The notes under the pieces were generated by a model. The model ran no database searches. It was not told the DNA's origin and worked only from the letters and a program-made list of their open reading frames with translations. 64,000 bases of DNA. Source: Geosiphon pyriformis uo1 (taxonomy: Eukaryota > Fungi > Glomeromycota). The stretch lies in assembly GCA_016748015.1 (NCBI GenBank), contig JAAOMT010000543.1, positions 124,001 to 188,000 of the forward strand. The letters are read 5' to 3'. Both the position numbers and the translations under genes were made by a program. Positions 14,519-46,700 of the stretch are shown in pieces; the first letter of the stretch is position 1, and every line of letters begins with the position of its first letter.

Positions 14519-15478
14519 TGTTACCAGATGAAATTAGAGATATTATTTAGCATAAAATTATCTTATAATTTCTATCATTAATTAGCATATATTATTGTTT
14601 CAAATTATCACTTATTACATTAGTAAAAATGTCCGAAATTATTATTTAATTAATAACCCAAATTGTACACAACACAAATGTAACCTAATTGCGATGATCA
14701 ATCATGCAATACCTCAAACTATGTAACATTCAAAAGTTTGCCAGAATTTATAGAAATTTGCCAAAATAATTAATAGTTCACCGAAATATCTAATAGTTTG
14801 CCAAAATATATTTTTAGTTCAGTGAAATTGTAGAAAATAACAAAGTTCAAGTTCATAAAATAGTGTTATGACAAGTTGTATAAAAGAAAAGCTTCTTTCT
14901 TTAAGAAAATGTATCTTACTTTAGATTTATCACTTAGAACCATTCCTATACACACAAAAAGAAATAAATATCAAATAATTTGAAAAACCAAATTCTTTAA
15001 TTATTGCACTTGGAAAATCCCCAAAACCCAACTAACATTTCGAAATTGATTAGCTATCAATTTCAGTAAACTGTTAGTGACTCCAGGCCTAGATAAAAAA
15101 CGTTTTCCTTGACAGAATTCTATTTCTTTTATATTTCTTTTATTTTTCTTTTATTTTATTTTTTTTTAATCATTAGGGTAGCCTACAGACAAAATTTCTG
15201 TAGAAGAGTTGACTTTCACAGCAAAGTAACTATACATTTTAGTGAGCTTCCAGATGAGCAATTCCTGGGAAAGAGTTGACATTTACTACAACGTAACTAC
15301 ATAAAGTAACTGGCATGGAATTGGCCATTCCACTTATAAGCCCAGCAGTTCAAATTATAGGAGATAATTTGAAGATAAATTCAGTTATTGGAGGTTCAAC
15401 CACATCCAGAAAACGTAAATTCACAGCAAACAAGCATCGACAACATTTAAGAAAAGAGACCAAAAACCTCCAGTAACA
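14519..15478 (+). repeat. 3' LTR of B1
   Basis: TGTTACCA...CAGTAACA, preceded by the PPT and followed by the TSD. Confidence 0.95.
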
Positions 15479-18400
15479 ACATTTTGGTGGAGCATCTCCT
15501 GTATGGATTTGATGTTGGACAATATCTGTTTTTCCCAAGTAATTGTTGTTTTTTGCAAATATATCTGCAAATTCAGCTATCAATTGTTTCAATTGTCTTT
15601 GTTGTTGAGGTTCTAAGGAACCCATGTTGATTCGAAAGAGTTTTTCTTCTAAAAAGTGGTAGTTTTCAGTAGTGAGAATGATATTTGAATTTGGGAGTAG
15701 AGTGTGTCTTACAATTTCAACGAAATTAGAGACAATTTGAGAGTTTTCATCTTGAAAAATATTGCTGTGTATGATTTCAATCTCTAGTTTGTTTAATAAG
15801 ACAATAGGGTAATTATTGGGATTGTAGAATGTAACTCGAAATTTTTTCATTCCTTTGGGAATATAAACATTTGGAATTGCGATTTCATGCTTCAAACAGA
15901 TTTGTTCATTGGATTCAAAAATTTGTTGTGTAGTGGTGGGTTTTGAGCAAGTGTAAATTTTGTGATGTTCTTCAAAAGGTGAAATGGTAATTGGCTAGAG
16001 AAGTTGTAAAATCTGGTAAGATTTATTTTGTGTATTAAGAGCTATGTTTACTGGAACTGTAAATTGTCCAGTTAAACCAAAACCTTGAATTCCTCTTTCA
16101 CTTTTTTCCAATTGTTCTCTGTTGTTTACTGATTGTAATCCCGAAATGTTAATTAAGGGTAAGTAAATTGCTTAAGCAATTTTTTCAGCAGATTCAATTT
16201 TGAATGGTTTGTTTGTCTTATTTTGTAACATGATAGTAATATCTTCAGTGTATCTTGCATCTATAACTCCTCCTCTAATATTGATTCTTTTGCTTGCCAA
16301 TGATAATCTGGAAGCAATTTAAACTATTGCTCCTGGTGAAATTTCAAGAGCAATTTTGAAATTGATTTTTGTTAAGGACTTTGGTTGGAGAACCAAAGTA
16401 TCTTTTTCTGAGTATCTTAGATTATATCCAGCATCAATTTCGTGTGCTTTTTCTGATCTGATTCTTTGGCCATGGTTGTCAAAATATTTAAGTTGTAGAG
16501 GTGGTTGCTTTTCAAGAAGATAGATGGGGGTGGTTGGTAATTCTTCTACTAGTTTAGATACTCCAAATTCGATTTCATTTTCATCATTCTCATCTGGCAG
16601 AGGAATGCTAAGAGCATAACATTCTAAACACCATTGGTCATCACAAGGCATAACATATTCTTCACACAATTGAATGTTTATTTGTTCTAATTGTTGAATT
16701 TGAGCTTCTTTGGTCAGATATGTGTGGCTTGCAATTTGGTGGTAGGTTTTTACTTCATCTTCATAATCAAATCCAGCTAATTCTATGGTATGCTCAATAT
16801 ATTTAGCTTCTTTCATTTGGCAGACATCTTCTTGGGTGGCTCTATTGATCAATGCTATTGCTAGGTCAAAAATTATTTTAGCATTATGAGGGTAGTGGTA
16901 AAGTTTATTGAGAGCACTGTTGTATACTGCATCAAATGGTATTCTTTTTCTGACTTTTTTCGAAATTAATAAAACATATTGACAGATCTGATCACATACT
17001 CTTTCTCTTATTGCTACATCAATCCAATTGCATTTTTCTGGTAGCATTTCTCCACAAATAAGACAAGAAGTTTTGTCCCATTTTTTACTTCTCTTTGGGG
17101 ATCCAAATTGTTCTCTATGGCATGCCTTGCAGAAGTAACAAGTGTGAGTTTCATATTCCTCTTCTGAGGAAATACAGACTCTCATAGATGAAAGCTTTTT
17201 TTTGCAATTTTTGTATTTTAGTGGAATGTATGGTGGTTCTTTTTGTGGTTCTGGTGTAGAATATCTAACTTTTTTCTATCCTCTTGATTTTTCAAAAATC
17301 TTTTGTTTTGTTTTCTCAGCCCAATTGAATGGTGATCCAAGAGCCATGTAGGTTTCAGTGAGTGGCATTTTTTTCTTTTCTTCAAATTCAAATACTAGAG
17401 CTTTTTCTAATCATTTGTTAAAAGTACCATAGGTTACAGGTACTATAGTATATTGTCTTTGGTATGAGATTTTAAGTTCTTGAGTTTCTCAGTTCAGGTT
17501 TGTATTGGCCTTGAGAAACCAATTATTTCCGACTAGAGCTTGGTATTGGGGTGTATCTATAACAAGAACTTTAACTGGAATGGTGATTTCATCAATTGTA
17601 AAGGGGAAATCATCAATTTCTCCTATTGAAGTCTTCTTCATACCATCAGCTGTGACAATAACTGTTTGAGCTGGTCTGTCTACGTTTTGTTTGAATTGTT
17701 GCATCAGCTGATAAGTGATAATACTTCCAGCTGATCCACTATCTAAGATTAAGCGAATGGGTTTTTCTTTTACTGTAGCTTCTGTGTACATAGCAGTAAT
17801 TGCTTTCTGTTCATTGACTACTGCATTACTAAGCAGAAATGGTGATTCATTTGCTTTAAATTCAAATGGAAATATATCTGACAGATTGGCATTTTGGGCA
17901 ATTTGAGCTGGTGAAATGGTGTGGTTGGAAGGATTTGATCTTGGTGCTGCAACTTTACCTTCAGAAAGTGTGGTTTGTTGAAAATCCGATTCCTCTGGTA
18001 TTGTAAGATAGCTGGGTTGAGTGTAATAGTAATTGGGTCTTTGCTGACCAGAATTTCAGGGAACCAACTGGTTATTTGGATTGATTCTGTTGTTGTTACT
18101 TTGCAATTGATTTTGGGGTATGAATTGGTTATGTTGAACCAATCTTCTTGTTGGTACTTGATATTGTTGAGTGGGTGGTGTCTGATATGGCTGAATTGGT
18201 AAAGATTGCTGATATTGTTGCTGCATTGGTTGTAAAGCTGGTGGATAGTAACTGTTTTGGTTTTGTGGTCTTGGTAAATAATAGGTTGGTGGTGGAAATT
18301 GGTAATAAGTTTGTTGTGGTGAAGAGTAACGTTGATTACTCCTGTTTTATTGGTCTCTTTGTAATTTTTTACAATTTTGTTTCCAGTGTCCTGGAATTCC

Positions 18401-24200: not shown

Positions 24201-27200
24201 CTTTTGTGTGAATTATTGCAAACTCAACAGCATTATTTATAAAAACAACTATCTAACTCCACAGATCCAAGAATTATTTAATGTTTTTAGAAGAAAAAAT
24301 AGTTCTTAATATTAAATTTAAATAATAGTTACTAACAAATAGTAATGAATTCAGCTAATAAGAAAAAGATAGCATTTACCACCAAAAAAAAAATTTCGAA
24401 TTTGACATTATGTCTTTTGGCTTAACTAATGCTCCAGCCACCTTTCAATGGCTCATAAAAATAGTTTACACTAGATTACTATAAAAATTTGCAGTAGTCT
24501 ACTTAAATAACACTAATGTATTTTCAAAAACATTTGATAACTATTTATATTATTTTCAACAAATATTTAAAAGATTAAAAAAAGCTGAATTAAAATTGAA
24601 TGCCACCAAGTATTTCTTTGAAAAAACTGAATTCAAGTTTTTGGAACATATTATAAGCAAAAACAGCATTAAAAAATATCTAGATAAAATCGAAATAGTC
24701 AAAAACTTTCTAATACCAACAAATCTTATGGAATTAAGAGTATTCTTAAAATTTGCTAAATACTATTATCATTTTATCCAAAACTTCTCCAAATTGGCTC
24801 AATTATTTTACCAGTTTTAAACAAAAAACATTAAATATGAATGAACTGAAACACAACAAAAAGCTTTTAATATCTTAAAAAAAAAACTTATTTAAGCTCT
24901 AGTATTAATCTATCCAGATCATAACAAACTATTCATCATTATCACTAATGTATCTAATTAAGTATTAGAAGCTGTGTTGTTACAAAAAAAAGCCAATAGA
25001 TAAGAACATTTAGTGACATATGCCAGTTGAAGTTTAAGTCTAACTGAAAAAAACTATGAAACTCCAGCATTAGAACATTTAGCTATCTATTAGACTGTTA
25101 TTAAATAAAAAAAGTACTTAAGCCAAAAATTTGATGTATATACTAATTACAAAAGATTGACATTAATTTAAAAGCAAAAATTTGGAGACAATTACCATAC
25201 AAGATAGAAAATAGAACTTTTACTATTTAATTATATTGTACATTATAAAAAAGAAAAAAAAAACAGAAATGCCAACAGTTTGTTATAAATAAGACAAATC
25301 TAGGACATTTTAACACAAAAATATAACAAAAAATGAACACACAAAAATATTAACAACTTTAATATTATATCAATACTCAATAGTTCAAGAAAAAATTATC
25401 TCAAAAAAACAAAACTACATAAAACAACAATTAAAATATTTTATTATTTACTAAGATATACTATATTAAAAAAACAGAAAAGATTTAAACCAACTATTTA
25501 AAGTAATTACAAAATTAAAAAAAAACAATACTGTTCAACATATATATAGATTTAATAGCAGAACATTCTCATAAAAAAGCAATTATGAAAAAAACCAAAA
25601 AAAAATACTATTGGTTATTAATATATCCAAATATTATTTAATATGTTTAAAGTTGTGATACTTGTCAAAAAAAAAAGTAACAAAATTCAATAAACCAATA
25701 AAACCAATAAAAATAAGACAACTTTTTGATCAAATTGGAATTGACTTAGTCAGACCATTAATAATAACTAGTAAAAATAACTAATATATAGCAATAGTCA
25801 TAGATTATTTCACAAAATAGCCAAAAGTAAAAGCAATTCAAAAAGCAGATGTAGAATTTATAGCTGAATTTGTTTACCAAGATTTAATTTGCTAACATGG
25901 ATGTTTAAAAGAATTGTTATCAGACCAGAAAACTTACTTTATGAACAGAATATTAACAGGATTAAGTTAAAAATTCGGAATTAAGAAACTATTATCATTA
26001 CTATATTATCCATAAACAAATAGCTTAGTCAAAAAATTCAATAGAACAGCAACATTACTAATTTAGATAGAAGTCAATACATATTTAATTAAACCAATAA
26101 CAGAAGCCAACTTTTAAAAAACATTACTAAGAAAAACATATGACTTAATAAAAACTCTAGAAAACAAAAGACAAAAAGCAGTTAATAACATATAAAAGTC
26201 ACAAAAAAAACAAAAAAAACGACATAATAACTAATTATTAAATAAATTAGCCAAATTTAAGATTAAAAACAAAGTATTTTTATATTATATTAAAGCAAAA
26301 AAAAATTGAAGTGAAAAATTTGATTCCAAATGAAATAATTTATTTTACATTGAAGAAATCTTAGAAAATTAGAATATATAAATTAAGATAGAACAACAAA
26401 ATCTTAACCAAAGCAGTACATGATAATTGACTGAAATTATATCACAATATAGCATTATTATTTACTAATAATATTCTACAATTAAGAGTACAACAAATAT
26501 TAATCAAATTATATAAGATTTCACAAAATCTGGAACCAATTATAATTATTAATACAAATATGTTAAATTAATTAACCAGAATGATATATAAAAAACCAAC
26601 ATATAACAAAGACAATAATAAAGATAGAAATTACAGACAATATTCACTCATTTGCACGACAATTATTATAATTAATTTAACATTAGAAATTGAGTCTGGA
26701 AGTTACTATTAATAAACAAAAAATACAATATAAAAACAAAATAGTAAATTGAAAATCCTAAAGTAAAGAACAATACATCAAACATTATATATCAAGAAAT
26801 CTAATAGACAAAATAATGAAAAAAGTAGAGATATTAATACCAGATAAAAAATTCATCATAAATAATTAAAACCAATAAATACAATAAATTTCCAAAAACT
26901 TTTGTTATTATTGGTTAGAACAGAAACTAAATATCCATAACTTATACATGAATAAAACTAAAAAGATGTTTGACCCAATAATAGTACAACAAATTAAACA
27001 AGTCATGATAAAAAACAATCTATTTACATATACAAAAGTCATATATTGACTACAAATAAGATTTCAAAACAAACCAAAAATACTGTTATATCCAAAAATG
27101 AGTACAGTAACTATTAACTAACTGAAAAAATTAATCAATACCCAATTTAAAGAATTGCAAACCAGAATTACAAAAGCAATTCTTGAGAAAAAAGTTATAG

Positions 27201-28151: not shown

Positions 28152-28619
28152 TTAGTTATTAAATAAACTAATTAAATTCAAGATTAGAAACAAAGTATTT
28201 TTATATCATACCAAAGCAAAAAACAATAAAGTGAAAAGTTTAATCCCAAATGGAATAGTTCATTTTACATTAAAAAATTTTTGGGAAATGAAACATACAA
28301 GTTAAAATAAAACAACAAAATCTTAACCAAAGCAGCACATAGTGATTAATTAAAACCATATTACAATATAATATTATTATCAATCAGTAATATTTTACAA
28401 CTGGAAGTACAACAAATACTACTCCAACCAGATAAGATTCTACAATATCTGGAACTAATCATAATTATTAACACAAACATATTTAATTAATCTATTAAAA
28501 CAGTATATAAAAACATGATATATGCAACAAAAACAACAATAAAAAAATGAAAATCTCAGACCACATCTACATAATGACTTAACAATTATTCCAGATCATA
28601 AATCAACAACAATTAAATA

Positions 28620-28913
28620 TAAGGCAAATTGCAACAAAATTAGACAAAGTGAATATTTATTAATAAAAAGCTATTTATAATGTAACTGTAAAATTGATCA
28701 ATATAACTGATAACATTTTGAAAAGTAATAACAGTACTCATTCATAACTTATGGACCTGTTAATTTCAATGCTTACTTTATCATACCAGAATGTGATGAA
28801 TATAAACTATAACATGATTAATATAGAATTATCTCTATATATAAAAATATAAATATGAAATTAATTTACATTAAATCTACCATGGAACCCAAGAATTACA
28901 GCACTATTCGAAC
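28620..28913 (+). repeat. Left terminal inverted repeat
   Basis: Aligns along its length to the reverse complement of the right TIR. Differences are mostly transitions, plus one indel of about 14 nt. Confidence 0.9.
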
Positions 28914-29115
28914 TAAACGTCATTAATGCGTATCAACATGCGTGAATTTCTGCGCATTGATTATCATTGGTCACATTTTGCATCCAGGGAACAATCGTTA
29001 CATTGTGAAAGTTCCCAATAATACGTCATGGATTAAGACACTGATCAGCATTATATCACACTGCGCAGCACGTCTTTCCAACGAAAAAGTTTCGTCCTTC
29101 ACATCATAAAGAAAC

Positions 29116-31098
29116 ATGAGCACACCATACGATGACGCGAAGAAGGAGTATGATGGAGCTAAGGGGAAGTTGGAAAGGTTAGGAAATCTGAGGATAAGTT
29201 TGGCGGCTGAAGAATGGGGAAGCGAGAGAGAGAGGAAGAGGTGGATAGCGGAGAAGGAACAGCTGGAGCGGGAAGAAGAAGAGTTGAAAACGAATGTAGA
29301 ATACTGGAAAGGAGAAATGAAGAGGCTGACGACCTCTCAGCCAGGTAACGACTTTGTGACTCGGGCGTTGGGGACATAGCGTAATGTGTACATGGTTGTA
29401 GTTGGGGACATAGAACTGAAATTCATTGATGCTATTGTCTGCTCCTAGCCATCAGTTCAAAGCGGACACTTGATGATTTAGAACGCGAGTATGGTACTAG
29501 GATTGCAATACTTGAAGCAGAGCACAGGAAAATCAAATACACCATCACAGCAGCACGTGAAATTGGTGAATATGTCATAAGCGAAGCACAAGTAGATACA
29601 CAATACATTTTAAATCTACTGTCAACCTCAGGCAACGTGTCATTTGAAAAGCTGAAATTGCCAGTCAATTTTCATAAGCTGCCATGCACAAGTGAAAGTG
29701 ATCTCCAGGTGAAATTTGTGAAGTTGTTTCAATCATTGCCAGAACAGATGAAACCATGGGGAATTCGAGACACATCAGTTGAAGGCTATCTCAAGGATCC
29801 AATCGGAAAGATTGATTTTACGATAATTCAAGGGAACATGGTTTTATGGGTGCATGTTGTTTCTCTAATTGAAATTAAGTCTACTTTGAATAGCAAAACC
29901 AGTCACTGTGAGGCACTCGGGCAGCTCATAGACAGATTTACAACTATTTTTGACTTACAAAAAAATCGATCATTTATTATTGGAGCTATTTGTGGAGATT
30001 CACAAGTTGAATTTGTGTGGCAGAATCGAGAGAAGAACATCAAGCGATCAGACTTATTAGATCTGAGTTTTACCAGTCAAACAATAGGGATGAATATGCT
30101 TCTAAACATGGTGACTGCATCACAAATGCAGCTGGGGTATTCTCCACCTGAAGATTATAAGGCAGCAGTTAGCTCTGTTAGTCATTTCAGTCCTGAGTCT
30201 GTCCTTCGACCAGCAGTCAATGAACGGGGATCTTTTGTCCTTAGTGGATTTATGAATAACAATCATGTTATCCTCAAGGTTTGTGATGTTGATCATGAGA
30301 TAAAAATACTTCACCATCTTTGTGAATGTGATTTCATTCCCAAGGTTATCACATATGGAAACCTTCCAGAGAACAAAAAGTAGGTGTTGACTTTGTGCTG
30401 AGATTTTTATTGATATTAATTGTATATTAATATTTAATATTTAATGATGTAGATACATGGTAATGACACCTTTTGGAGAACATCTTGATGTTGTTAAGCA
30501 TGGCTGGCATGGAATTCTCAAAGCTTTTCAAGATGTTGCTGAAGCTATGAAGTTTGCAAATAACCATGGCATCCTACATCGTGACATTTCATATGGAAAT
30601 ATTGTATTCTATGAACAACATGGCTATCTCATAGACTGGGGTGTTGCAGTAGTAGGATCACCAGAAGTGGAAAATGCCTTAACTGGTACCATCCTGTTTT
30701 CCTCTGTAAAGGTTTGTCCCGTGATTCTTCAAATTGCATTATGTACATATTACTTGCAAACATATACCCTTTTCATTTTTCAGGTTACAACAAAATTGCA
30801 TGAGAACAAAAAGTTCACTCACACATTTGATGATGACATCGAATCTCTCTTTTATACATTTTTATATGTAGCATGTGATGGTGTGCTCAAGTGGAAGAAA
30901 GGTCTAGGAGGCATGGATTTTGTTGCAGCAATGAAGTTTTACACAGTATATGGAAACTTCAGTAAACAACTGAAGTATGTAAAGAATAATGAACTGCTCC
31001 CTTACTTGCATGGATTTCGTGACATCATTGTTTCCAATTGGACAGATAAGATGGCAATAGACATTGATGCAGTTATTAGGGTGTTTGACATTAAGTAG
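29116..31098 (+). CDS. Crinkler-like protein: coiled-coil header + PD-(D/E)xK nuclease-like domain + fungal-type (FunK1) protein kinase; 4 exons, 577 aa
   Basis: Exons 29116-29344, 29449-30379, 30453-30711 and 30784-31098, with GT-AG introns of 104, 73 and 72 nt, splice into one open frame. Nuclease-like KIDFTII...LIEIK. Kinase motifs VILKV, HRDISYGN, LIDWG, TGTILF and DDIESLFY. Confidence 0.85.
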
Positions 31099-31678
31099 CT
31101 ATTCAGCATGATACATGAGAGGAAGAGAACACTTTTTTAATTCTTTATCATGTGAATCGTGATTTTTTGCTTCTTCAGATGCAATGGTATAAACTTGCTG
31201 CCAAGTCCCATGATTAAAATTAGCATGTCTTAAATTTGAATGAATAAAGTGAGAAATGCAATTGCTCAAGAAATTAACTGTATAAATTGTCATCTCGAAC
31301 GAGGACACTCATGATTTACGCGTACGTAGTAAAGACAACAATAAAATACGGTCCTACCTCAATTGTACCACACCTCGAATATATCCCCGAAAAAGCTCCG
31401 TCCCTAAGTGGGGATATAAACGCGGTAGGACTGTACGTACGTAATAATAAAAGTGAAATTTTGCTTTCTCAGTAATTTCGAAATTAAACCATGTGATTAT
31501 ATTGATAACATATTAATATTGAGTGCGTATACGTATAAGTACACCCTCACATAGTTGCCAATTTCTTTTCGTTTTTGAAAATAGCTTATCACAAATAGTA
31601 ACAATAACAGACGAAAGAAATTCAGTAAAATAAACAAAACCATTGATGCATAAAATTAATATATAGGATTACCAGTAT

Positions 31679-33427
31679 ATGGAAAATTATAATTATAATG
31701 GTTTGACTGAATATGAAAAAGCAGTGCATTTCTTTGAGATAGGTTGCAAATGTGGTTGCTCAAAAATGATTCCGAGAGAAAGGTTTGCCGAATTACGTGG
31801 AGCGTTTCAAGCTCTCTCTAGACCCGAACAAGATATATTTTTAATGGCCCAGCTGAATGCCATGAATGGTGGAGAAATAACGGCTAGTCGACGTCTTAAA
31901 AATAAAACGCGTACCAATAAGCGAACGTTTTACTACTGAGATCGCAATACGCCACTTTGTCAGAAAACGTATCTCAATATGTTGGGAATTGGTCGCACTC
32001 GCTTCGAAAACGTCAGAAATCACCTAGCGACGAAGGTATCATACCGCGCGTTCATGGTAACATAAAACGAATGCCGCGATGGAAAACCAAAATAACCATT
32101 GATATAAACGTTGCTACTGCCGTAAAGAATTTTCTCGAAAACTATGCGGAAATTCATGGACTACCAAGTCCTGGTAGAAATGTCAATCGCATTACTCAAT
32201 CACTGACACTATTGCCAGCTGAAACGAGTTATAAATCAGTCTATCGTGATTTTATTGCTGGTCTCGAAAATGATAGCACGTTGCAGTTGTTAAAATATGA
32301 TGCGTTCCGCAAGTTATGGCACTAATTAACACCTTCTATTCAAATTATGAGTCCAAGAACGGATTTATGTGACACATGCCAACATTTTCGAAATGGATTA
32401 CAGTACAATGCTCGCAAGGAGGAAGAAGCAAGAGACTTATTAAAGAAATTCAAAGAACATCTAGTTAAAGCTAAATTAGAGAGAAATTATTACCATAAAA
32501 ATACGAAATTAGCAGAACAACAGAGAAAATTAGTAAATGAGCATTTTATAACAAGAGGTAAAGCCTATTGTAGCATTGACGCGACTGCTCATTATAGTTA
32601 CGATTGAGCACAAAACGTTCACGCCCCCCATTCCCGATCAACAAGTAAGTAAAATTTATTATCTTAGTCCGCGTAAAGTGCATTTATTTGGTATTCAAGA
32701 TGAAGCAGTTCGCGAACAAATTAATTACGTTCTCGATGAAGATGAAATAATTGGCAAAGGTCCTAATGGTACGCTGAGCATGGTATTCGATGGAATTAAG
32801 AGACTGAATAAAGGCGAAAAACATCTAAAGATTACTTGTGATAATGCGGGTGGTCAGAATAAAAATAATGCCACCATTTGATTTTACCTATATTTAGTAA
32901 TTTGCAGTTATTACGTAAGTATCGAATTAAATTTCATGGTACCTGGACATACCAAATTTAAGTGTGATGGTAGTTTTGGATTGATTAAAAAGCTTTATCG
33001 AAAAACAACAGTAGATTGTGTGGATCACATTGTTGAAGTTGTGAAAAAATCAAGTACAGCGGGATTAAACAAAGTTCAGTGCTATGAAAACGGCAAAGGC
33101 TTTCAATACTTAGATCTTAATTCCGTGTTGGGAATTTTTTTTAAGAAATTGAGTGGTTTACAAAAGTATCAGCATTTTCTATTTGAAGCAGCTCAACCTG
33201 GAGTTGTCAAAGCCCAGCTGGTTGCTAATGGTACTTATACTGAATTTAATTTGTTAAAAACTAAAAAAGCAAGTGTTTCTGAAATTACCAAAGAAATTAA
33301 GTCCTTTTCAATCCTAGTACTAACCCCTCCTCCTTTGGATTACAGAAGGCAAGAATACCTTTATCACAATATTCGTCCATTTGTCCGGGATGAATTCAAA
33401 GATATCACTTGTCCAGAACCAATCTAA
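31679..33427 (+). pseudogene. Sola2-like DDD transposase, intronless; two frameshifts, one TAA, three in-frame TGA
   Basis: CKCGC and LCQKTY N-terminal motifs; RVHGN; GLPSPGR; TDLCDTC; HYSYD*AQ; KGPN; CDNAGGQNKN; VPGHTKFKCDGSFGLIKK. Frameshifts at ~32035 and ~32630, TAA at 32323. Confidence 0.8.
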
Positions 33428-33477
33428 TCTACACTGCCAATAAATAAACATATTTATATTACCGAAGCTGTAGAAAT

Positions 33478-34463
33478 ATGAATAATCAAAACGAAATTGA
33501 TTCCCTTTACACTTTTATCAAAGAACAAGTCAAACTCAAAGGGAAAAAATTAAAAATCATTGCTGATTGAGATGAATGTTTACAATCTAGTAAGCCGTTT
33601 TTATTGTGAGAAGCTGGGAAGAAGAACCTATCTTTTTCAGAATATTTCAAGAAATTTTGAAAAAATTCCCAAATTGTTTATTCTACTACCTGTGGTTCTA
33701 GACTAAATAAAAAGGCATGAGAATATTCTTATGTTGACAAAGATGATCCAAATGAGAAAAAGAATATTGAAATGTTAGCTAATGGAACTTTAAAAAGAAG
33801 AATAAAAGCCAATCTAGAACCTCACTATAGTAATCTTCCCAAATTCTATGACTGAACCTTTTATCTTTCATTAGCCCAAGAATTATTGCAGGCTTTAAAA
33901 GAAGAACTAATTAGTGAATTAGTGATTGTCAGTGCTATGGTCAAAGGTCGGAAAAATGCTGAAAAAGGAAAGAAAGACAAATTCATTAAAAATTTTGCTA
34001 ATTTTTCTCAAAGCAGATTGGTTTTAATAAAAAGAGTAATTCCCAAAAAAAGTGAAGAAGAAAAAGGGGATGGCTATAAACCTACTCACTGAGATTACAT
34101 CAAAGAAAATATTCCTGATTTTGATATTTTTATTGATAATTCTCTAATCATTATTGAAGAAACTAATAAGTTATTACCTGATAAAACTTATGTTATACCA
34201 AATTACAAATGCAACCAAAATCTCAAAGCCTCCAACATCTATCATGTAACAATTAATACCACTGATTTAAAAGAAGGTGATTTTGTTATTGCTGCTTTAG
34301 AAATAAAAAATAACCAGTTAAAGAAAAAACTAAAATTTCTGCAAATACAGAGAGAAACAGTTGAGTTTTTTTGATGATAATTAATGGATTACTAATTTTT
34401 ATCTTAGTTGCTTTAATAGTTAAAATTACAATAGTGCAGAAAAAACATTTTAGAAAAAATTAA
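33478..34463 (+). pseudogene. Genetic-code-4 (TGA=Trp) HAD-superfamily-like ORF with probable C-terminal membrane anchor; likely of Mollicutes-related endobacterial origin
   Basis: ATG at 33478 followed by 300 codons with no TAA/TAG until 34378-34380. In-frame TGA at 33568, 33607, 33658, 33718, 33853 and 34090, and no TGG. Motifs IIAD(W)DECL, VIVSA and DFDIFIDN. A 1-nt shift near 34320 would extend it through (W)VFLMIINGLLIFILVALIV to TAA at 34461-34463. Confidence 0.8.
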
Positions 34464-34628
34464 AAAATTATTGACAAAACAATGACAAAGATCATATCAA
34501 GCTATTATTTTTCGTTCTTGGTAAATTCATAAGTAATTTGTCTTTGTCTAAATATTCTTAAAGAGTTTAAGTATTATTAATTTTAAAACATAGAGAGCAA
34601 TTTTTTTTTTCTTGTTCTTTTTTAAAAT

Positions 34629-34932
34629 GTTTCTAATGGTGCTATAATTCTTGGATTTTATAGTAAATTTAATGTAAATTAGTTTCATATATTTTATTTT
34701 TATATAGAGATAATCCTATATTAATTCTGTTATGATTTATATTTATCACATTTTGATATAATAAAGTGAATATTAAAATTAACAAGTTTATAAGTTATGA
34801 ATAAGCACTATTATTATTTTTCAAAATGTCATTAATTATACTGGTCAATTTACAGTCATATTATAATCAGCTTTTTATTTATGTTATATAATAAAATGTT
34901 CACTTTGTCTGGTTTTGTTGCAGCATGTCCTA
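34629..34932 (-). repeat. Right terminal inverted repeat
   Basis: Reverse complement of 28620-28913. Ends ...GCAGCATGTCCTA. Confidence 0.9.
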
Positions 34933-36329
34933 TACGAAAATTATTATCAATTATCAAACAATTTGTTATCAAAACACCAAAAAAATAGCCAAAGTCACCA
35001 CATATTAGCAACTACAGAACCAAACAAAGTACTGGTCAAATAAAATTATAGAAAAAGTAAAAAACAATTTTGAAAAAATATTGGTAATTGTTTTAACAGA
35101 AAAGTTAACTAAAAAAAACTAAAAACAATAAATAAAACAACTTTTTATACTATACTGTTATTAACAATTGGAACAAAAGCTGAATATTAAAGAATTATAT
35201 ATTAATAAATCCAAAAGAATATTCAATTGAGAAATAATACAACAGATTAAAAATTTTATTAGAAAAAAAATGAATTCTGTATTATATATTAAAACAATTT
35301 ATTGATTACATATCATATTTTAAAATTATTTAGAAATACTACTATACTTAAAAATAGAAACAATAACTATTGACCAATAGAAAAAAACAAACAATTTATA
35401 ATTTAAAGACATAAAAATCAGAATTAAACAAACAGTATTAGAGAAAAAAATAAGAGACTTAATTCAAAATGAAAATTTTAACAAAACTTAATATTAAAAA
35501 AGGAGATAATATTACTTATAGAAAAAAATACAAAAAAAAAAGTAAAAAAAACATATAAAAAAATAGATTAATAAGAAAATAGTATTTAATAAATAAGCAT
35601 AATATCAAAAAACTATGACACATTACTTAGTAATATACACATTGTTAGAAAATTAAAACACATTGCTCAGTAATGTACATATTGTTAAAAATTTAAAGCA
35701 TATTGCTTAGCAATAAGCATATTGTCAAAAAAATAATAGCACATTACTCAAAAATATATAAGATCTTATATAATGAAAATTATGTATATATAGCAAAAAT
35801 GTTAAAAACAGAAAAGAAACAATTCAGTTTAGACTAATTAGATAACAATATTTTTCTTTTTAAAAGATAGTTTTCTATAACTTAAAGTGAAATTATACCA
35901 ATATTAATAAACTTATCTATTATTATCCAATTTATGTTATTATTTATTGATTAAAAAAATATTAATCAATTTTATATTATTAATACTTTATGTTAATAAA
36001 AGCCAATAATTAACCATACTGGACTAATAGCTCTTAATTATGGCTATTAATAAGATACTAATTTCTTATTTTTTTTCTTGATTTTTTTTTATTTTTTTTT
36101 ATTTTTTTTGTTATTACTAATTTATAAAAAAAAATTAAAGTGCTGAGTGTTTGACATTAAATATAATTTGGTAAAAAACCTGTAAAACAAGAATAAAATA
36201 CTCATAAAATTAAAGATAGCTTATCAGAAAGACAAAACTATCAGAAGAAACTGGCCACTATACTAAAAAAAAATTTATGAAAAAAATTTTTAGAATGAAT
36301 ACTGAAATATTTATTGAATCTTTGTTTAT

Positions 36330-40710: not shown

Positions 40711-43700
40711 CCCAAAATGTCAAAAAAAGTAGAACAATGAACCATATCTCACTTGCAGCAAACAGTTGCTTGATAAAGGAATGTGGAATAATATTCCTGG
40801 GCAAAGAGAAACGTGTGATACTTCATGCCAATACATGATCCTCATCAGTGATTGAATGAGTTGTGGAATGTCTATTACTGCAGCCTGGCACCAAGCAATC
40901 AATCACTTGAATGGTATTTACATAACAAGAACAAAATCTGGCATATGGTCAATGCCAAAATCAAAGAAGCCATGCTTAGTGAAATTTTAGAGATCAAAAA
41001 CAACCCACCAGAACCAGTCGACATTGTTTTGATTTCCAATCTAGAAGCATTTTTAGATATTAAAACAGGTTCAAAAGAATTTCATGGACATTATCAAAAC
41101 TTAGCACCCACTAGGGAAGAGCAAAAGCAACACTTAAAACAGTTGAACATTAGATTGTATCAACACTGCTTAATTTCTTATGACTTTCAATATTGTAATA
41201 AGTGTGACTTTATTTACAATCCACCAATCTGCAAGATCTACATGATTTCAGAGGAAAAAAAACCAATCAGTCACTGTGCATCAAAATCGGAATCAAATTT
41301 TAATCCCAATTCAAACTCCGACAACAATAATAATGAAAACAATGATTTTAGTTTTATTTTATATAGTAATAACAATGACAATGATTTAGACTCAGATTCA
41401 AAATCCAATTTAAACTACAAACAATATATTGCACTCCTCAATCTCACCAAAAAACAAGAACTAAAATGGTTCAGTGATAATAATGAAGGTATTATGCCAG
41501 AACATATATATAATACTGATGCAGGATTTGATCTGAAATATCTAGAAAAAAATTTCATCAAATTAGAACTCCATTCGTACATCTGCATTAATCTCAAAAT
41601 AGCACTGGAAATTCTAACAACAATAATGGTTCAGTTAGTATCTAGGAGCAGCTTAGCCAAAAAGAGAATCAACATTAGAAGAAGAATAATTGATGCAGGA
41701 TACATAAGAAATATCATTGCTATGCTACAAAATGACTTAGAAAAAGCATATATTATAGATCCAAATAAAAAGATAGCACAAGCAATATTTTTGCTTTTGG
41801 TTAAGATAGCTTAATTAGTATTAGTAGAAAACAGAGAAGAATTAGGAATCACAGCTAAAAGGATACAGAAATTCAGATCAATGGGTAGAATAGATGTACC
41901 AGTTAATATGGCAGAAAAAAAAATTGTTGACAAGAGAAAAATTATCTCCATCTGTCAATTAATCTCCATTTTACTATATAACCAGTACATAGTAGTCATA
42001 AAAAAAAAGTGAAGGATCAGGTTCAAATTTTTGAGACAGAAGCAACACTTTGTGAATTAGGAGAAATTGGATTAATCAATTTACACATACCAGCCAAGAA
42101 TCATAATTACATAAAAATTCTTATCTACAACAATACAGGAAATGTTATCAGGATACCAGAAGGAACAACCATTGGATACTTAACCACTAAAATTGAAAAC
42201 CAACTGTCTAACATCATTCCAGACTTTTCACAACTTTGCAGATATGTGGATATTATATCACAAACAATATATGGACAAAATAAATGTTATTTGCTCCAAT
42301 CAAAACAATTAAAACAAATAAACATGGGAAATTTAGATCCACTACAACATATACAGCTCAAAATGTTACTTAACAATTTCAATAACATCTTTGTCAGCAA
42401 AAATGAATTTGGCAGAACTGACATCATCCAACATAAAATCAAGACTGAGGATGCAATACCAATTAAACAGAGAGCATACAGAGTACCACTAGCTAGCCAT
42501 GAGATCATTTGTCAAGAAATCAATCAGATGCTTAACAATAGATTAATTCAATCATTAATAAGTCTATGGTTATTACCAATAGTGCTAGCCTATAAGAAAA
42601 ATGGAAAAATCCGCTTTTATGTAGATTACTGAAAACTGAATGGAGTAACAAAAGAAGATAGTTATCTGACTCCAAAAATACAAGAACTGTTTGACAATTT
42701 TGGTGAAAAGAAATGGTTCTCGACACTAGACTTAGACAGTGGTTACTGGCAAGTAGCCATAAAACCAGAAAATAAAGAGAAGACAGCATTTACCATGTAA
42801 GAAAAGAATTTTGAATTTGAAGTTATGTCATTCAGCTTAATGAATGCTCCTGCCACATTTCAACAACTCATGGAAATTGTCTATATCAGACTACTATGGA
42901 AATTAGTAATCGTATATTTGGATGCCACCAATATATTCTTAAAAACATTTGATGATTATTTACATCATCTTCACCAAGTATTTGAAAGACTCAAATGAGC
43001 AGAATTAAAACTAAATGTTAACAAATGCTTCTTTGGCAAAACAGAGCTCAAGTTTTTGGAACATGTTATAAGCAAAAATGGTATCAAAACAGATCTGGAT
43101 AAGATCACAATAGTAAAGAACTTTTCAGTACCAACCAATTTGACAGAACTAAGAGCATTTTTGGGATTTGCAGACTATTATTACTGTTTTATCAAGGACT
43201 TTTCTAAACTGGCTCAGCCACTCCATCACTTACAAACTAAGAATGTAAAGTATTAATAGACAGAAACTTAACAAGAAGCATTCAACACATTAAGAAGAAA
43301 GCTTATTTAAGCTTTAGTGTTAATGTATCCAGATTACAGCAAACCATTTATCATCACCACTGATACATCAAGTCAGATATTGAAAGCAGTACTATCACAA
43401 AAAGAACCAAATGGAAGAGAACATCCAGTAGCTTACACCAATAGAAACTTAAGTTCAGCAAAAAAAAACTATAATACTCCAGCATTAGAACACTTAGCTA
43501 TCTATTGGGTTGTTATCAAATGGAAAGAATACTTGAGTCAAAAGTTTGATGTGTACATTGATTACAAAGAATTAACTTCAATCCAAAAGTAAAAATTTGG
43601 AGACAATCGCCATGTCAGATGGAAGATAAAACTTTCACTATTTAATTATACAGTACATTACAAAAAAGGAAAAAAAAACAGAAATGCTGATAGATTGTCA

Positions 43701-46700
43701 TGAATGAGACAAATCTAAAAAGACATTCTAACCCAAAAATATAACAAAAGATAAATATACAAAAATACCAACAACTTCAATATTATATAAATACTCAATT
43801 GTTTAAGAAGAAATTATCTCAAAAAAAACAAAGAAACATAAAACAACAATCAAAATATTTTATTAACCATCAAAATATACTTTACTGGAAGAACAAAAGA
43901 AATCCAAATCAACCAACCAGAGTAATTACAGAACCACAGAAAGAGACAATATTATTCAACATGTATTCAGATCCAACAGCAAGATATTTTCATAAAAAAG
44001 CAATCATAGAAAGAACCAAAAGAAGATACTATTGGCTATTAATGTATCCAGATATCATTTAATATGTTAAAAATTGTGATGCTTGCCAAAGAAGAGATGG
44101 AACAAAACCCAGTGAACCATTGAGACCAATCAAAGTAAAACAACCATTCAATCATATCGGAATTGACTTAGTTAAACCATTAACAATCACCAGCAAAGAC
44201 AACAGATATATTGCAGTAGCCATGAATTATCTCACAAAATGGCCAGAAGCAAAAGCCTTTCAAAGAGCAGATGCAGAATCCATTGCTGAATTCGTTCATC
44301 AAGATTTGATCTGTTGACATGGATGTCCAAAAGAACTATTATTAGATTAAGGAATGCATTTTGTGAATAGAACATTAGAAGAATTAAGTCAAAGATTTGG
44401 AATTAAAAGACCATTGTCATTACTATACCATCTACAAACCAATGGATTAGTTGAAAGATTTAATAGAATATTGTGTAAAGCAATTGTCAAAATCAGCCAA
44501 AAAAATCAAGACAAATGGAATTTGTTTATACCATCAGTATTATTTGCTTATTAGACAATGAAACAAGACACTACACAAGCAACACTATTTGAATTAGTAT
44601 ATAGTAGAACAGCAACATTACCAGTGGAGATAGAAATCAATACTTATCTAGTAGAACCAATAATCAAAGACAATTTTCAAGAAACATTGCTAAGAAGAAC
44701 ATATGACTTGATAGAAACTCTAGAGAACAAGTGACGAAAAGCAGCTAATAACATCTAAAAGTCACAAAAAAAACAAAAAGAAAGACATAATAACCAACTA
44801 CCAGATAAACCAGTTGAATTCAAGATTAGAAACAAAGTACTTTTACATTATACCAAAGCAGAAAAACAATGGAATGGAAAATTTGACCCCAAATAGAACA
44901 GACTATTTCACATAGAAGAAATTCTTAGAAATGGAGCTTACAAATTGAGATGGAACAACAAAATTTTAGCCAAAGCAGTACATGATGATCAACTGAAACC
45001 ATATTACCATATAGTGTTACCATCCACTAGTAAAATTCTACAATTAAAAGTACAGAAAATACTAGTCCAACCAGATAAAATTCTACAAGATCTGGAACCA
45101 ATCATAATCATTAGACCAAACACATAAGATTGAATAATAAAAAGAGTATATAAAGACATGGTAGACATAATGGAGAACTTCAGAAAAATGGAAATCATTT
45201 ATGACATCCATGCACTAGCACAATAACTATTCCAACTAATTCAATAACAGAATATAGAAATTACTATCAACTAACAAACCATTCGATACTGAGATATCAA
45301 AAAGATATCCAAATACAAAAGTTAAAGAAAAACAGAAAACATTATTAACAAAATGGTTCTGAAAATAAAATTAGCAATAGAAAAACCAATAAGTGTTACC
45401 ACATATTAAGAGTTAACCAAAGAAACTTAAAAATGGTGGATACATGAATTTCCAAGAAACTTTTGTTATTTTCACATGGGACAACACTTGAACATTTAGA
45501 ACTTATACATGAATAAAACAAAATAATTATTTGACACAACAATAATGCAACAACTAGAACAATTTGTGGAAAAAAACAATTTGACTGTATATACAAGAGC
45601 CATATATTGGCTACATACTAAATTTCAAGACAGACCAGACATCTTACTTAATCCAGAATTGGACTTCATTACAGTTAAGCAAATAGAAAAAATAACCAAT
45701 GCCCAATTTGAAAAATTACAGAACAGAATAACACAAGTAATTCTCAAAAAAAAAGTTCAAGAAATACTCAAAAATGGAGAATTAGAGTTAGGAGATTTGA
45801 GAGATCTTAACAAAGTTCAATATTAAAAAGGAGGAAATAATGTTACTTATAAAATATAAAAAGTATATTAGTATAAAAATTAGCCAATCAGAAGTAGCCA
45901 TAGTAAATGTAGAATTCCAGAATTCCTTTCAAAAAGAATTGCAGGATTCCAGAAATTTCAGGATTCTCATACAAGAAATCACAGGATTCCAAAATTCCAG
46001 GATTTTTCTTAAAAGAATTGCAGGATTCCAGGAATTGCAGGATTCCTGGTGTGAAAAATTAAGAAATTGAAGAATCTTAATTATGTATATATAGTGGTAG
46101 TGTTAAAAATAGAAAAAAACAGATCTAGTAGATTTAAGACCTCTCAGTTTAGATTTGATCTAAGCAACCTTCTATATCACAAATATTAATAAATAATTAT
46201 TCACTATCTCAATCCACTTTTCACTATCAACATTTCATGTTGATAGTAATTCATACTTAACTACACTAGAACAATAGCTTTTGATCATAGCTATTGATGG
46301 GATACTAACTTGAAAATTGCCTTGGCTTATTTCTTTATTTTTTTGTTTTCTTTTATTTTTTATTGTTATTTCTTTTGTTGTTTACTAATTTGATTAAGGA
46401 TTAAGTACTGAATTATTGACATTAAGAATTGCCTGATAAAAGACCCCTGCAAGTGGGTAGAGCATGTATAAAAATTACAGATTACTTACCAGAGGATTTC
46501 TGGTCACCAAGCCGAGAAAAAAATTGACAGAATTGCAATTTTAGAAGGTTACTGAAAACAACTATTGAATCTCTGTCTATTATACAAAAGACTCTACAAT
46601 AAAACCTTCAGATTAATAATATCTTCAGATACTAATGCCAACAGTCATCAATTAAACACCAAGTTACAGGTTTGTTATTTGTTTTGAGACCCCAAATAAT

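Follow-up and report, generated by a model that had tools for sequence, protein, structure and literature searches.

Mollicutes-related endobacteria (MRE) live free in the fungal cytoplasm. They show within-host diversity, recombination, many mobile elements and horizontal transmission (PMC4916391), and kinase and LRR genes have been transferred repeatedly from Glomeromycotina to MRE (PMC10507103). The transposon family described here involves the same partners and the same gene classes. However, the transfer reports describe the arrival of genes in the bacteria but no vehicle for it, whereas here such genes are carried by a terminal inverted repeat (TIR) transposon that has copies in either genome, and the nuclear genome also contains bacterial-code sequence. 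Pack-MULE-type and other gene-capturing DNA transposons resemble this family in their TIRs, target-site duplication (TSD) and variable host-type genes. Unlike our family, which has its own transposase gene and includes a complete, expressed kinase without a parental copy, Pack elements lack a transposase and contain fragments of genes that are still present elsewhere. DUF7869 (PF25273) transposons encode a homologous transposase: the 660-aa Rhizophagus proteins are 43% identical to the one studied here, and the bivalve proteins 31-35%. These relatives are open in the standard code, whereas the clade of the present element is set apart by a long stem and has TGA as a Trp codon. The DUF7869 transposons of Rhizophagus and bivalves possibly belong to the Sola superfamily, which has been reported from Rhizophagus (PMC5751038).

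NUMTs and Wolbachia-to-host insertions likewise place foreign-code DNA in nuclear chromosomes, but they are not bounded by TIRs and TSDs, form no element families and decay neutrally, in contrast to the present family, which derives from lineages under purifying selection. In the sexual stages of Sordariomycetes, A-to-I mRNA editing corrects premature stop codons, mainly UAG into UGG, and such stop-correcting editing is not known to occur outside Ascomycota. In-frame stops at Trp positions of functional genes are common to that system and ours, but here UGA is the only codon concerned, and no sign of editing was observed. We are not aware of any nuclear transposon family that maintains its own genes in working order under a non-nuclear code, and a literature search for a nuclear family functional in such a code found none.

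Results

Structure and insertion site of the element

The window, which is the whole 64,000-nucleotide stretch of Geosiphon pyriformis DNA that was analysed, contains a genuine nuclear TIR transposon at 28620-34932 with three genes all in one orientation. Its features are as follows.

28618-28619, no strand: left copy of the TA target-site duplication; a single TA is found at the empty-site paralogs in the window
28620-28912, + strand: 5' terminal inverted repeat; inverted-repeat blocks I1, I2, I3 and I7; 44 genome matches
29116-31098, + strand: FunK1-type protein kinase cargo; exons 29116-29342, 29447-30379, 30453-30709 and 30782-31098; TAG stop
31290-31450, no strand: palindromic spacer stretch between kinase and transposase, an inverted repeat and possibly a small nested repeat
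31679-33427, + strand: DUF7869-family transposase pseudogene (PF25273), with frames and lesions assigned against 10 paralogs
33478-34463, + strand: ORF3, a predicted HAD-fold phosphatase-like protein with a predicted C-terminal membrane anchor, delimited by paralogs and code-4 homologs
34464-34630, + strand: conserved 3' subterminal region, 73-90% identical to 9 other copies and always located between ORF3 and the 3' TIR
34631-34932, - strand: 3' terminal inverted repeat, paired with the 5' TIR and also present in other copies
34933-34934, no strand: right copy of the TA target-site duplication, as indicated by the empty-site paralogs in the window

The TIRs are about 300 bp long, close to the roughly 290 bp given by an earlier sequence-only reading of this DNA, and are defined by four collinear inverted-repeat blocks with 76-85% complementarity between 28618-28912 and 34631-34934. 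The 5' TIR end motif, TRGG.CA..(T)GCAACAAAA..AGACAAAGTGAA, is kept in Gigaspora and metagenomic relatives, and TA adjoins TRGGGCATGC... in every other copy with readable ends. When the flanks are fused over one TA, they reproduce the length and order of the empty-site paralogs at ~48.4 kb and 50.85 kb of the window, which bears out the TA duplication and clean insertion described earlier. The insertion target is a repeated AT-rich sequence with four further copies inside the window; farther off, a dUTPase domain and a weak aspartic-protease match below the cut-off were seen, and nothing else. The host contig exceeds 385 kb. The sequence-only reading had raised the possibility of chimeric internal joints; the kinase-transposase joint is spanned by a 2431-nt zero-mismatch contig from a DNA run that may be the source sample, and the adjacency of transposase and ORF3 recurs at at least 10 loci. 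In the spacer, the depth of run X4 in the bin 31268-31456 is ~12 times that of its neighbours.

Cargo kinase gene

The cargo kinase is an expressed, spliced gene in the nuclear standard code. PF17667 matches two of its exons with 40.0 and 25.7 bits (cut-off 24.1), and the catalytic motifs 'HRDISYGN' and 'DWG' are present in the coding sequence. In run X3, which behaves as RNA, a 1342-nt contig matches the kinase at 100% with 29343-29446 and 30380-30452 spliced out, other contigs skip 30710-30781 at the third joint, and the 3' contig extends to 31245. All three introns are of the GT..AG type. The joined coding sequence is open over 577 codons with ten TGG and no TGA codons for Trp, in agreement with the earlier description of a spliced standard-code gene. 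The term 'effector-like', which that reading had applied to this kinase, does not suit it: neither a Crinkler domain nor a signal peptide was seen, and it is other copies of the element that carry Crinkler-kinase cargo. A search of the Geosiphon genome with kinase exon 2 returned only the exon itself, with no parental or second copy.

Transposase and ORF3 of the window copy

PF25273 matches 32882-33424 with 36.6 bits (curated cut-off 26), and homologs carry the same domain. The gene had been read as an intronless transposase with mixed Trp codons; the mixture is real, with three TGA (31937, 32605 and 32879) and two TGG codons at its Trp sites, but the gene is a pseudogene because of three lesions: 1 nt has been lost after 32034, CAA has become TAA at 32326, and 1 nt has been inserted near 32633. 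Paralog contigs show bases inserted or omitted at these lesions. X3 contigs additionally cover the 5' portion of the transposase, showing that nuclear copies are transcribed.

ORF3 begins 50 bp past the transposase stop and, as read earlier, uses TGA alone for Trp, with eight TGA, no TGG and no TAA or TAG among the 300 codons of 33478-34377. Two lesions are found here as well. The TGA at 33853 is CGA (Arg) in paralogs and thus a CGA-to-TGA change in the window copy, and a 1-nt deletion near 34348 throws the anchor (34349-34463) out of frame, the conserved anchor ending at 34463. With five lesions in total, three in the transposase and two in ORF3, the window copy is dead.

On fold and motifs, ORF3 qualifies as a predicted HAD-fold, tail-anchored phosphatase-like protein. 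The residues D27-W28-D29, K170 and D220-D221, which follow the HAD catalytic pattern DxDx(T/V), Lys, DD, are invariant across 16 ORF3 homologs, and the window ORF3 bears 'ADwDECL' and 'IFIDNS'. An AlphaFold2 model of the homolog P0125 has a pLDDT of 80.7, and the PDB matches listed for it by Foldseek are mostly HAD hydrolases, including deoxyribonucleotidases, with a probability of up to 1.0 and TM values of 0.33-0.60. A Pfam search of ORF3 (E up to 0.01) gave no HAD family, a PDB profile search was blank, and the Atlas features indicated NT5C/FCP1 only at 0.84.

The transposon family

The following family counts are lower bounds. There are at least 20 ORF3-bearing copies and at least 120 transposase matches, and the TIR of the window element is present at at least 44 places in the Geosiphon genome. 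The order TIR, transposase, ORF3, subterminal region, TIR is kept at at least 10 loci on large contigs, and the 50-bp spacing between transposase and ORF3 is repeated in at least 10 copies. Transposase and ORF3 are thus the conserved core of the whole family rather than endosymbiont DNA packaged by a Pack-type vehicle, as had been suggested. The transposase gene is present in the window copy and most other copies, and a related element has an LRR protein instead of the HAD-fold ORF3 as its 3' gene. The window copy and all other Geosiphon copies lie on nuclear contigs. From these comparisons, the window element is best classified as a decayed copy of what is most probably a TA-targeting cut-and-paste TIR family of Glomeromycotina.

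The cargo varies among copies. Other copies encode a Crinkler N-terminal domain with a kinase, and the other cargo ORFs of the family use TGG alone for Trp. Cargo is shared by L041, L042, L043, L045, L051 and L052, which implies mobilisation after the nuclear cargo had been acquired and hence the need for an active nuclear transposase. Transposase segments that are 98-100% identical between some copies point to recent activity. Older Geosiphon copies contain many TAA stops, and reading in the standard code leaves none of the Geosiphon copies open. Standard-code relatives whose TIRs match were not seen in this genome, and no tRNA gene was found within any element.

TGA as a tryptophan codon

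The sequence-only reading had noted mixed TGG and TGA in the transposase and called ORF3 alone a bacterial-code gene; the use of TGA for Trp extends to the transposase, and does so in several genera. Across Geosiphon, Ambispora, Gigaspora and two metagenomic hosts, the TGA:TGG counts at five conserved transposase Trp sites are 9:1, 3:6, 2:7, 8:2 and 7:2, and the relatives' predicted proteins have W at conserved transposase Trp sites. The TGAs at 'YYwD' and 'TIwF' are common to all Geosiphon copies compared, and the divergence of the copies is therefore younger than these TGAs. Among Trp codons, the TGA fraction is 0.61 for the transposase and 0.71 for ORF3; for Lys, Glu, Gln, Leu and Arg, A-ending codons make up a fraction of 0.64-0.96, and TGA stands to TGG in the same ratio as A to G at synonymous positions. 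Other stops at Trp sites amount to one TAG, from a Gigaspora copy in decay, and two TAA, from the likewise decayed L043 and L044, versus dozens of TGA, and a single Gln-to-stop change occurs in ~5,500 codons.

Substitution patterns reveal selection on this reading frame. Values of pN are 0.03-0.15 versus pS of 0.34-0.80 with same-genome copies included; within-genome copies differ mainly synonymously (pS 0.34-0.38, pN 0.03-0.05), and dN/dS is ~0.1. A neutral simulation leads to an expectation of 7-16.5 TAA or TAG codons, and no internal one was observed in intact copies. Within the core module TGA acts as a synonym of TGG for Trp, and strong purifying selection has kept the frame open in that state. 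A RIP-like hypermutated repeat was considered as a class for this sequence and rejected, given that TAG and TAA are not in excess at Trp and Gln codons and that selection is present.

The ordinary nuclear gene HSP70 is open over 643 aa with no stop. The base after the ten listed TGAs is G in seven, A in two, T in one and C in none; C after TGA is the leakiest read-through context. An A-to-G change at 31939 is absent among the X3 differences listed, although X3 contigs cover the site, which is a weak negative.

Links to the endobacteria

The proposal that ORF3 is of endosymbiont type agrees with the distribution of its family, which is otherwise found on code-4 bacterial-type contigs, and sequenced endobacterial genomes contain homologs of both ORF3 and the transposase. 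The ORF3 homolog KLL01966.1 belongs to Mycoplasmataceae bacterium RC_NB112A, a sequenced MRE. The contigs of five ORF3 relatives were read, and their contexts are code-4 and bacterial in type, comprising the MRE genome, phage-integrase contigs and one tRNA-Ser contig. The ORF3 types of Geosiphon group in a single clade, itself nested within other relatives. A fully standard-code ORF3 ortholog, which would have pointed to a fungal gene, was sought and not found; paralogs have TGG at some sites only. The GC3 of the 3' genes (0.21-0.29) is similar to that of MRE genes (0.22-0.28), versus 0.28-0.62 for the cargo of the same elements, and the LRR gene of the related element is 41% identical (E 3e-21) to MRE-type LRR proteins.

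In Candidatus Moeniiplasma MAG contigs (124.8 kb, 30% GC), restriction-modification genes flank the transposase, which has TGA at the same sites and is listed as I3273_02745 of Candidatus Moeniiplasma glomeromycotorum. This Moeniiplasma transposase, with an LRR-kinase gene 8 kb away, diverges first within the TGA clade, whose sister clade is the standard-code Rhizophagus and G. margarita group. Its identity is only 52%, a frameshift interrupts it, and it has no ORF3 alongside. The TIR motif was not found at this gene with up to 5 mismatches, and no complete TIR-bounded element was found on an endobacterial contig. The Geosiphon assembly yielded no bacterial 16S, and GTDB scans returned nothing, which carries little weight since the known MRE genome was missed there too.

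Discussion

In which genetic code is the core module of this family translated? The anatomy and multi-copy nuclear location of the element, the two-code pattern with its selection, the endobacterial transposase copy and the code-4 contexts of the ORF3 relatives that were read are the observations to be explained. We tentatively favor translation of the core module in a system in which TGA encodes Trp, most likely MRE, with a family that shuttles between MRE and the nucleus; we place this at not quite an even chance. The transposase would be of eukaryotic origin, and the family would persist by movement between endobacterial and nuclear DNA. The fuller scheme, which we put forward with more reserve, is one transposon in two genomes and two codes. 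Endobacterial ribosomes would make the transposase and the 3' gene, and the enzyme, made in or released from the bacteria, would cut and paste nuclear TIR-bounded copies, for which it would have to reach nuclear DNA. The 3' genes would be acquired during the bacterial phase and the 5' cargo during the nuclear phase; the 5' slot is occupied by intron-bearing nuclear-code genes (here the FunK1 kinase, elsewhere the Crinkler-kinase). Kinases and Crinkler-type genes would thereby pass to the bacteria and HAD and LRR genes to the nucleus, and the family would be a candidate vehicle for the known fungus-to-MRE kinase and LRR transfers and, more broadly, for fungus-endobacterium gene exchange. Against this reading stand the failure to find a complete TIR-bounded element on an endobacterial contig, the diverged and frameshifted state of the one MRE transposase, which has neither a TIR motif nor ORF3 nearby, and the cargo-sharing copies, whose mobilisation calls for active transposase in the nucleus.

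The X3 transcription of nuclear copies fits equally well with the main rival, a purely nuclear family whose UGA codons the fungus itself decodes as Trp. It might do so with an unusual tRNA-Trp or a suppressor, by efficient near-cognate read-through, or by turning UGA into UGG through A-to-I editing, perhaps at one stage only; the endobacterial copies would then be ordinary fungus-to-MRE transfers. We consider this rival unlikely but a serious contender. Every copy found is nuclear and has TSDs, including the cargo-sharing subfamilies; the RNA-like run has transposase-region contigs; the MRE transposase copy is degraded and lacks TIRs; and the documented direction of transfer is from fungus to MRE (PMC10507103). 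However, the cargo of the same elements never uses TGA (none of ten Trp codons here, TGG only elsewhere) and HSP70 has no in-frame stop, and cytosolic UGA decoding is therefore not general or efficient. Furthermore, the 3' genes have endobacterial composition and relatives in bacterial-type contexts. Under leaky read-through, each added TGA would cost yield, yet TGA:TGG tracks the synonymous A:G ratio and ORF3 has up to eight TGAs, none of the ten listed TGAs preceding C. Editing is disfavored, weakly, by the missing A-to-G difference at 31939, and no element has a tRNA gene.

The code-4 signature might instead be history only, left by an endobacterial module that entered the nucleus many times, is translationally dead and has moved, where it has moved at all, through the trans action of standard-code transposases unrelated to it. 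The five lesions of the window copy, the many TAA stops of older copies and the lack of any Geosiphon copy open in the standard code suit this account, which we nevertheless regard as improbable: the mainly synonymous within-genome differences would make each copy a separate recent arrival from a selected source, the nearly identical transposase segments speak for recent activity, and no Geosiphon standard-code relative with matching TIRs was seen. A one-off Pack-type capture, in which a single element took up endosymbiont DNA and a host kinase, would explain why the kinase is unique to the window copy, but it is very hard to credit when ORF3 sits beside the transposase at a 50-bp spacing in at least 10 copies, the element has its own transposase gene, the genome holds no parental kinase and TGA codons also occur in the transposase, in several genera. 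We give just as little weight to TGAs produced by decay, such as RIP-like G-to-A hypermutation of TGG, or to a fungus/endobacterium assembly chimera. Two window stops are indeed C-to-T changes (at 32326 and 33853), but the few TAG and TAA codons at Trp sites are confined to decayed copies, Gln-to-stop changes are nearly absent, and dN/dS and the expected number of TAA and TAG codons contradict neutral decay. The same pattern in independent assemblies of other genera opposes decay and chimera alike, and the long contig, the internal joint on a DNA-run contig, the spliced cargo and the many diverged copies oppose the latter.

Each reading that survives would be new, be it an endosymbiont-nucleus shuttle, a hidden UGA-to-Trp decoding in an early-diverging fungus or repeated arrivals of transposon-shaped endosymbiont DNA. 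Standard-code gene predictors split these genes or span their TGAs by false introns, which may have led to mis-sorting of such loci between fungal and endobacterial assemblies. For the kinase and LRR exchange between Glomeromycotina and their endobacteria, the shuttle that we tentatively favor would supply a candidate vehicle with defined ends, an enzyme and diagnostic peptides, and the question is now testable.

Results

The element and its insertion site

The stretch (G000:C673:124001-188000 in a 128-Mb assembly of 792 contigs) contains a transposon with terminal inverted repeats (TIRs) and three co-oriented genes, a cargo kinase followed by two core genes:

28620-34932, TIR transposon, cargo kinase at its 5' side
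31679-33427 (+), transposase
33478-34463 (+), ORF3, predicted HAD-fold phosphatase-like gene

The segments 28618-28912 and 34631-34934 pair as four collinear inverted-repeat blocks that are 76-85% complementary. The insertion target is a repeated AT-rich sequence with further copies in the window at 26300-27069, 44863-45313, 48021-48820 and 50780-51285 (68-84% identical), which served as empty sites. When the flanks of the element are joined via a single TA, the product is collinear with, and of the same length as, the uninterrupted repeat paralogs at ~48.4 and ~50.85 kb, and the element therefore spans 28620-34932 with a TA duplication. Thus, the TIRs and the TA duplication proposed in the sequence-only reading are confirmed. 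The TA adjoins the consensus end TRGGGCATGCTGCAACAAAACCAGACAAAGTGAAC in other copies as well, and the TIRs, the target-site duplication and the transposase domain (DUF7869, PF25273, matched by this copy) place the element among the DUF7869 transposons. Elsewhere in the window, at 40852-41811 and 15353-15895, lie an ORF with a dUTPase domain and another whose weak similarity to spumavirus-type aspartic proteases falls short of the curated cut-off; both may be remnants of retroelements close to the insertion.

A conserved core with variable cargo

A genome-wide search with the TIR, which that reading had proposed, located the left end (298 bp) at at least 44 places across the Geosiphon assembly; cargo differs among copies. 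The ORF3 region recurs at at least 10 other loci on large contigs with 67-94% identity, always between the transposase and the 3' TIR. A transposase piece has at least 120 matches in the genome and an ORF3 homolog of the type found in Mollicutes-related endobacteria (MRE, genetic code 4) has 26. Homology among the copies starts exactly at TATATATAGGATTACC..ATG ahead of the transposase, and the cargo upstream differs: a protein-kinase ORF in L046, a Crinkler N-terminal domain with a kinase in L049 and a 449-codon ORF of no recognised kind in L043. Six copies (L041, L042, L043, L045, L051 and L052) share cargo segments with 81-98% identity in their readable parts, 2.4-3.3 kb of the cargo region being N in L041, L044, L045 and L051; a cargo-bearing version was thus amplified. 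The cargo ORFs that were checked encode Trp by TGG only. At L053:4950-4993 and L065:4970-4993, a TIR-like end motif (…ACAAAACCAGACAAACTGAA…) lies directly ahead of the transposase start, which hints at a minimal element without a cargo slot (TIR, transposase, 3' gene, TIR) in this subfamily.

The element had been regarded as a one-off Pack-type capture. This view is abandoned because the transposase and ORF3 form a core at the other loci and the kinase lacks a parental copy, a search of the Geosiphon genome for a second kinase copy having found none. Unlike Pack-type elements, the transposon has its own transposase gene. The concern that the internal joints could be chimeric is also settled. 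The kinase-to-transposase joint is spanned by a 2431-nt zero-mismatch contig in DNA run X1, which may be the source sample of the window assembly, and the transposase-ORF3 joint is bridged by a rhizosphere metagenome contig. An assembly chimera is excluded.

Genes of the window copy

Two kinase exons, searched exon by exon, match Pkinase_fungal (FunK1, PF17667) above the cut-off. The joined exons form a 577-codon open coding sequence with HRD and DWG motifs, 10 TGG codons and no TGA. In run X3, a 1342-nt contig is identical to the window and skips 29343-29446 and 30380-30452, other contigs skip 30710-30781 as a third joint, and all three skipped intervals have GT..AG borders. Run X3 is labelled 'RNA? 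(probably DNA)' and was treated as RNA on the basis of these intron-skipping contigs; it thus behaves as RNA, and this kinase copy is transcribed and spliced. The gene is, as had been claimed, a spliced standard-code gene. A second X3 contig passes the kinase stop codon and reaches 31245.

Two side observations concern the cargo region. The depth of run X1 at 29189-29393, most of kinase exon 1, is ~2.6x that of the rest of the kinase gene, and an X1 contig links ~29393 to 31650 with a gap in the sequence between them; some other copies may share the 5' kinase piece without the kinase body. The spacer at 31290-31450 holds a long palindrome, which may be a small nested repeat; in run X4, from a closely related organism, its bin has ~12x the neighbouring depth.

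In this copy, the transposase differs from its paralogs by the loss of one nucleotide after 32034, TAA in place of CAA at 32326 and one extra nucleotide near 32633, and three of its Trp positions are TGA. ORF3 starts 50 bp past the transposase stop and has 300 codons with 8 TGA, 0 TGG, no TAA or TAG, and 28% GC. Of the eight TGAs, the one at 33853 corresponds to CGA (Arg) in the other copies, and the loss of 1 nt near 34348 shifts the frame ahead of the conserved hydrophobic C terminus (...VFWMIISGSLIFILVALVVKITIVQKKRFRKN in paralogs). At the transposase lesions, paralog contigs among the reads carry the matching inserted and omitted bases. Because of these frameshifts and stop changes in the core genes, this element copy is dead: its transposase and ORF3 are dead, and its kinase is not.

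TGA as a selected Trp codon

The core module has evolved as if TGA encoded Trp, and the cargo as if TGA were a stop codon. Wherever the core has TGA, the proteins of relatives from Ambispora, Gigaspora and metagenomes carry W (YYWD, PRWKTK, KLWH, YDWAQ and TIWFYL). At the DNA level, the Ambispora leptoticha copy has a 589-codon frame that is open only with TGA as a sense codon (2 TGA, 3 TGG), two other Trp sites are TGA in Gigaspora rosea, and two metagenomic contigs contain frames of 625 codons with TGA at two Trp sites (L054, a fungal contig) and 601 codons with 3 TGA (L065). At five conserved Trp sites in ten copies, the TGA:TGG counts are 9:1, 3:6, 2:7, 8:2 and 7:2, with a single TAG, in a decayed Gigaspora copy. 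Across ~5,500 codons, there are 1 TGA off the Trp sites and 3 TAA/TAG. The TGA share of Trp codons is 0.61 in the transposase, 0.71 in ORF3 and 0/10 in the cargo kinase; the core share equals the A-ending share of Lys, Glu, Gln, Leu(TTR) and Arg(AGR) codons (0.64-0.96). A nuclear HSP70 gene stays open, free of stops, over 643 codons.

The copies were compared by Nei-Gojobori counts with translation table 4.

Pairwise divergence of core genes
Most distant Geosiphon copy vs others, transposase: pN ~0.14, pS ~0.77
Other same-genome copies vs each other, transposase: pN 0.03-0.05, pS 0.34-0.38
ORF3: pN ~0.29, pS ~0.61

All Geosiphon copies compared have TGA at YYwD and TIwF, and the divergence of these copies therefore arose after the codons became TGA. 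When one copy is mutated toward another with the observed substitution spectrum, 7-16.5 internal TAA/TAG codons are expected and 0 are seen.

RIP-like decay was considered as a source of the TGAs and rejected. The Trp sites hold 1 TAG and 2 TAA, in decayed copies, against dozens of TGA, and a single Gln-to-stop change further disfavours such decay. Public gene models of Geosiphon, Ambispora, Diversispora and Gigaspora (P0010, P0015, P0085 and P0091) skip the TGA Trp-site stretches with introns that are apparently invented.

Relatives of the core genes in endobacteria

A full-length transposase search identified I3273_02745 of Candidatus Moeniiplasma glomeromycotorum, which is 52% identical and contains PF25273. 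TGA occupies the same Trp sites in this gene, a single frameshift splits it, and it sits between restriction-modification genes in 124.8-kb, 30% GC MAG contigs. A 673-aa LRR and protein-kinase gene (L063:18923-20944) lies 8 kb downstream of it. In a maximum-likelihood tree, all the TGA-bearing copies group in a single clade (support 100/99) on a stem of length 0.75, with the Moeniiplasma copy as its earliest branch. The sister group comprises standard-code 660-aa proteins of Rhizophagus and Gigaspora margarita, with bivalve proteins outside.

A word-based search with ORF3 returned Geosiphon self-matches only, and an exhaustive phmmer search returned 89 relatives. In Mycoplasmataceae bacterium RC_NB112A, an MRE of Racocetra, one of the relatives whose contigs were inspected forms the C-terminal domain of a 'uridine/cytidine kinase'. 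Others lie on code-4-called contigs of 32-35% GC beside phage integrase and once AIG1/LRR genes, one shares its contig with a phage capsid gene, and the closest outgroup is followed by a tRNA-Ser gene. At L059:8001-10260, L068:231-2458 and L067:859-946, on contigs of bacterial type, the neighbour of the ORF3-like gene is a phage-type integrase in two cases and a tRNA-Ser gene in the other, an arrangement expected of integrative-element cargo. Types A, B and C of Geosiphon ORF3 fall in one clade nested inside the ORF3 family, which suggests, as judged from the gene tree, that the gene was captured once from the bacterial side. The MRE relatives anticipated in the sequence-only reading thus exist for both ORF3 and the transposase, and bacterial contigs yielded no complete element.

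What protein does ORF3 encode? The DWD, K and DD residues are invariant in the family, and HAD hydrolases, deoxyribonucleotidases among them, make up most of the Foldseek PDB matches listed for an AlphaFold2 model of the homolog P0125 (pLDDT 80.7). No HAD family was matched in profile searches of Pfam and of PDB sequences, and the putative HAD assignment is based on the motifs and the predicted fold.

Related elements have other 3' genes. In L054, both TIR end motifs enclose a divergent standard-code Crinkler gene, the transposase and a 528-codon LRR gene (4 TGA, 2 TGG) with 41% identity (E 3e-21) to LRR proteins on MRE-type contigs. The L065 3' gene is of a third kind (6 TGA, 0 TGG). GC3 is 0.21-0.29 in the 3' genes, 0.22-0.28 in MRE genes, 0.27-0.39 in intact transposase copies and 0.28-0.62 in the cargo of the same elements.

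Several searches were negative or uninformative. A search for bacterial 16S in the Geosiphon assembly gave eukaryote-type matches only, and no tRNA genes were found in the window or in any of the elements. A tRNA-Trp pattern matched neither the CCA nor the UCA form and is thus uninformative. Pattern scans of GTDB species genomes with the transposase and the MRE protein P0173 found no matches, and as the known MRE genome was itself unmatched, these scans carry no information on endobacteria. In the Shine-Dalgarno and promoter comparison ahead of the starts, MRE genes also lack a Shine-Dalgarno sequence and all of the sequence is AT-rich.

Discussion

How can a nuclear transposon keep its core genes in a code other than that of its cargo? 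We tentatively favor a two-compartment life cycle, in which the core genes are translated in endobacteria and the family shuttles between them and the nucleus, at a likelihood somewhat short of an even chance. We infer this cycle because MRE read TGA as Trp, hold a basal transposase copy and have relatives of the 3' genes in their genomes or on contigs of the same type. The core would be translated in cytoplasmic MRE as the simplest system physically present that reads TGA as Trp. The cycle has three weak points: bacterial contigs yielded no complete element, the MRE transposase copy is distant and broken, and the cargo-sharing nuclear copies imply that transposase activity is needed in the nucleus. 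The main rival is that the fungus itself reads UGA as Trp by a novel route. This host decoding is the less likely reading, given that TGA is strictly absent from the cargo and that the TGA:TGG ratio is synonymous-like. It is still less probable that the code-4 signature is only ancestral and that all copies are now dead, and other readings share what likelihood is left.

NUMT-like and Wolbachia-like nuclear insertions resemble this family only in being foreign-code DNA. Our literature search revealed neither an account of a nuclear transposon maintained in a non-nuclear code nor one of a vehicle for fungus-endobacterium exchange. MRE reportedly recombine, spread horizontally, contain many mobile elements and are hyperdiverse inside their hosts (PMC4916391), and repeated transfers of kinase and LRR genes into them from Glomeromycotina have been reported (PMC10507103). 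Metagenomes of soil and rhizosphere from several studies (runs X7-X22) contain 10-17% of the 31-letter words sampled from the stretch under study, and in one rhizosphere run the transposase, ORF3 and 194 nt of the kinase have contig matches of 90-99% identity. The two-compartment cycle would explain this occurrence of element sequence in metagenomes. Furthermore, it would explain why same-genome copies resemble samples of a diverse selected population (pS 0.34-0.38) and why the Ambispora copy is no more distant from them (pS 0.40-0.42).
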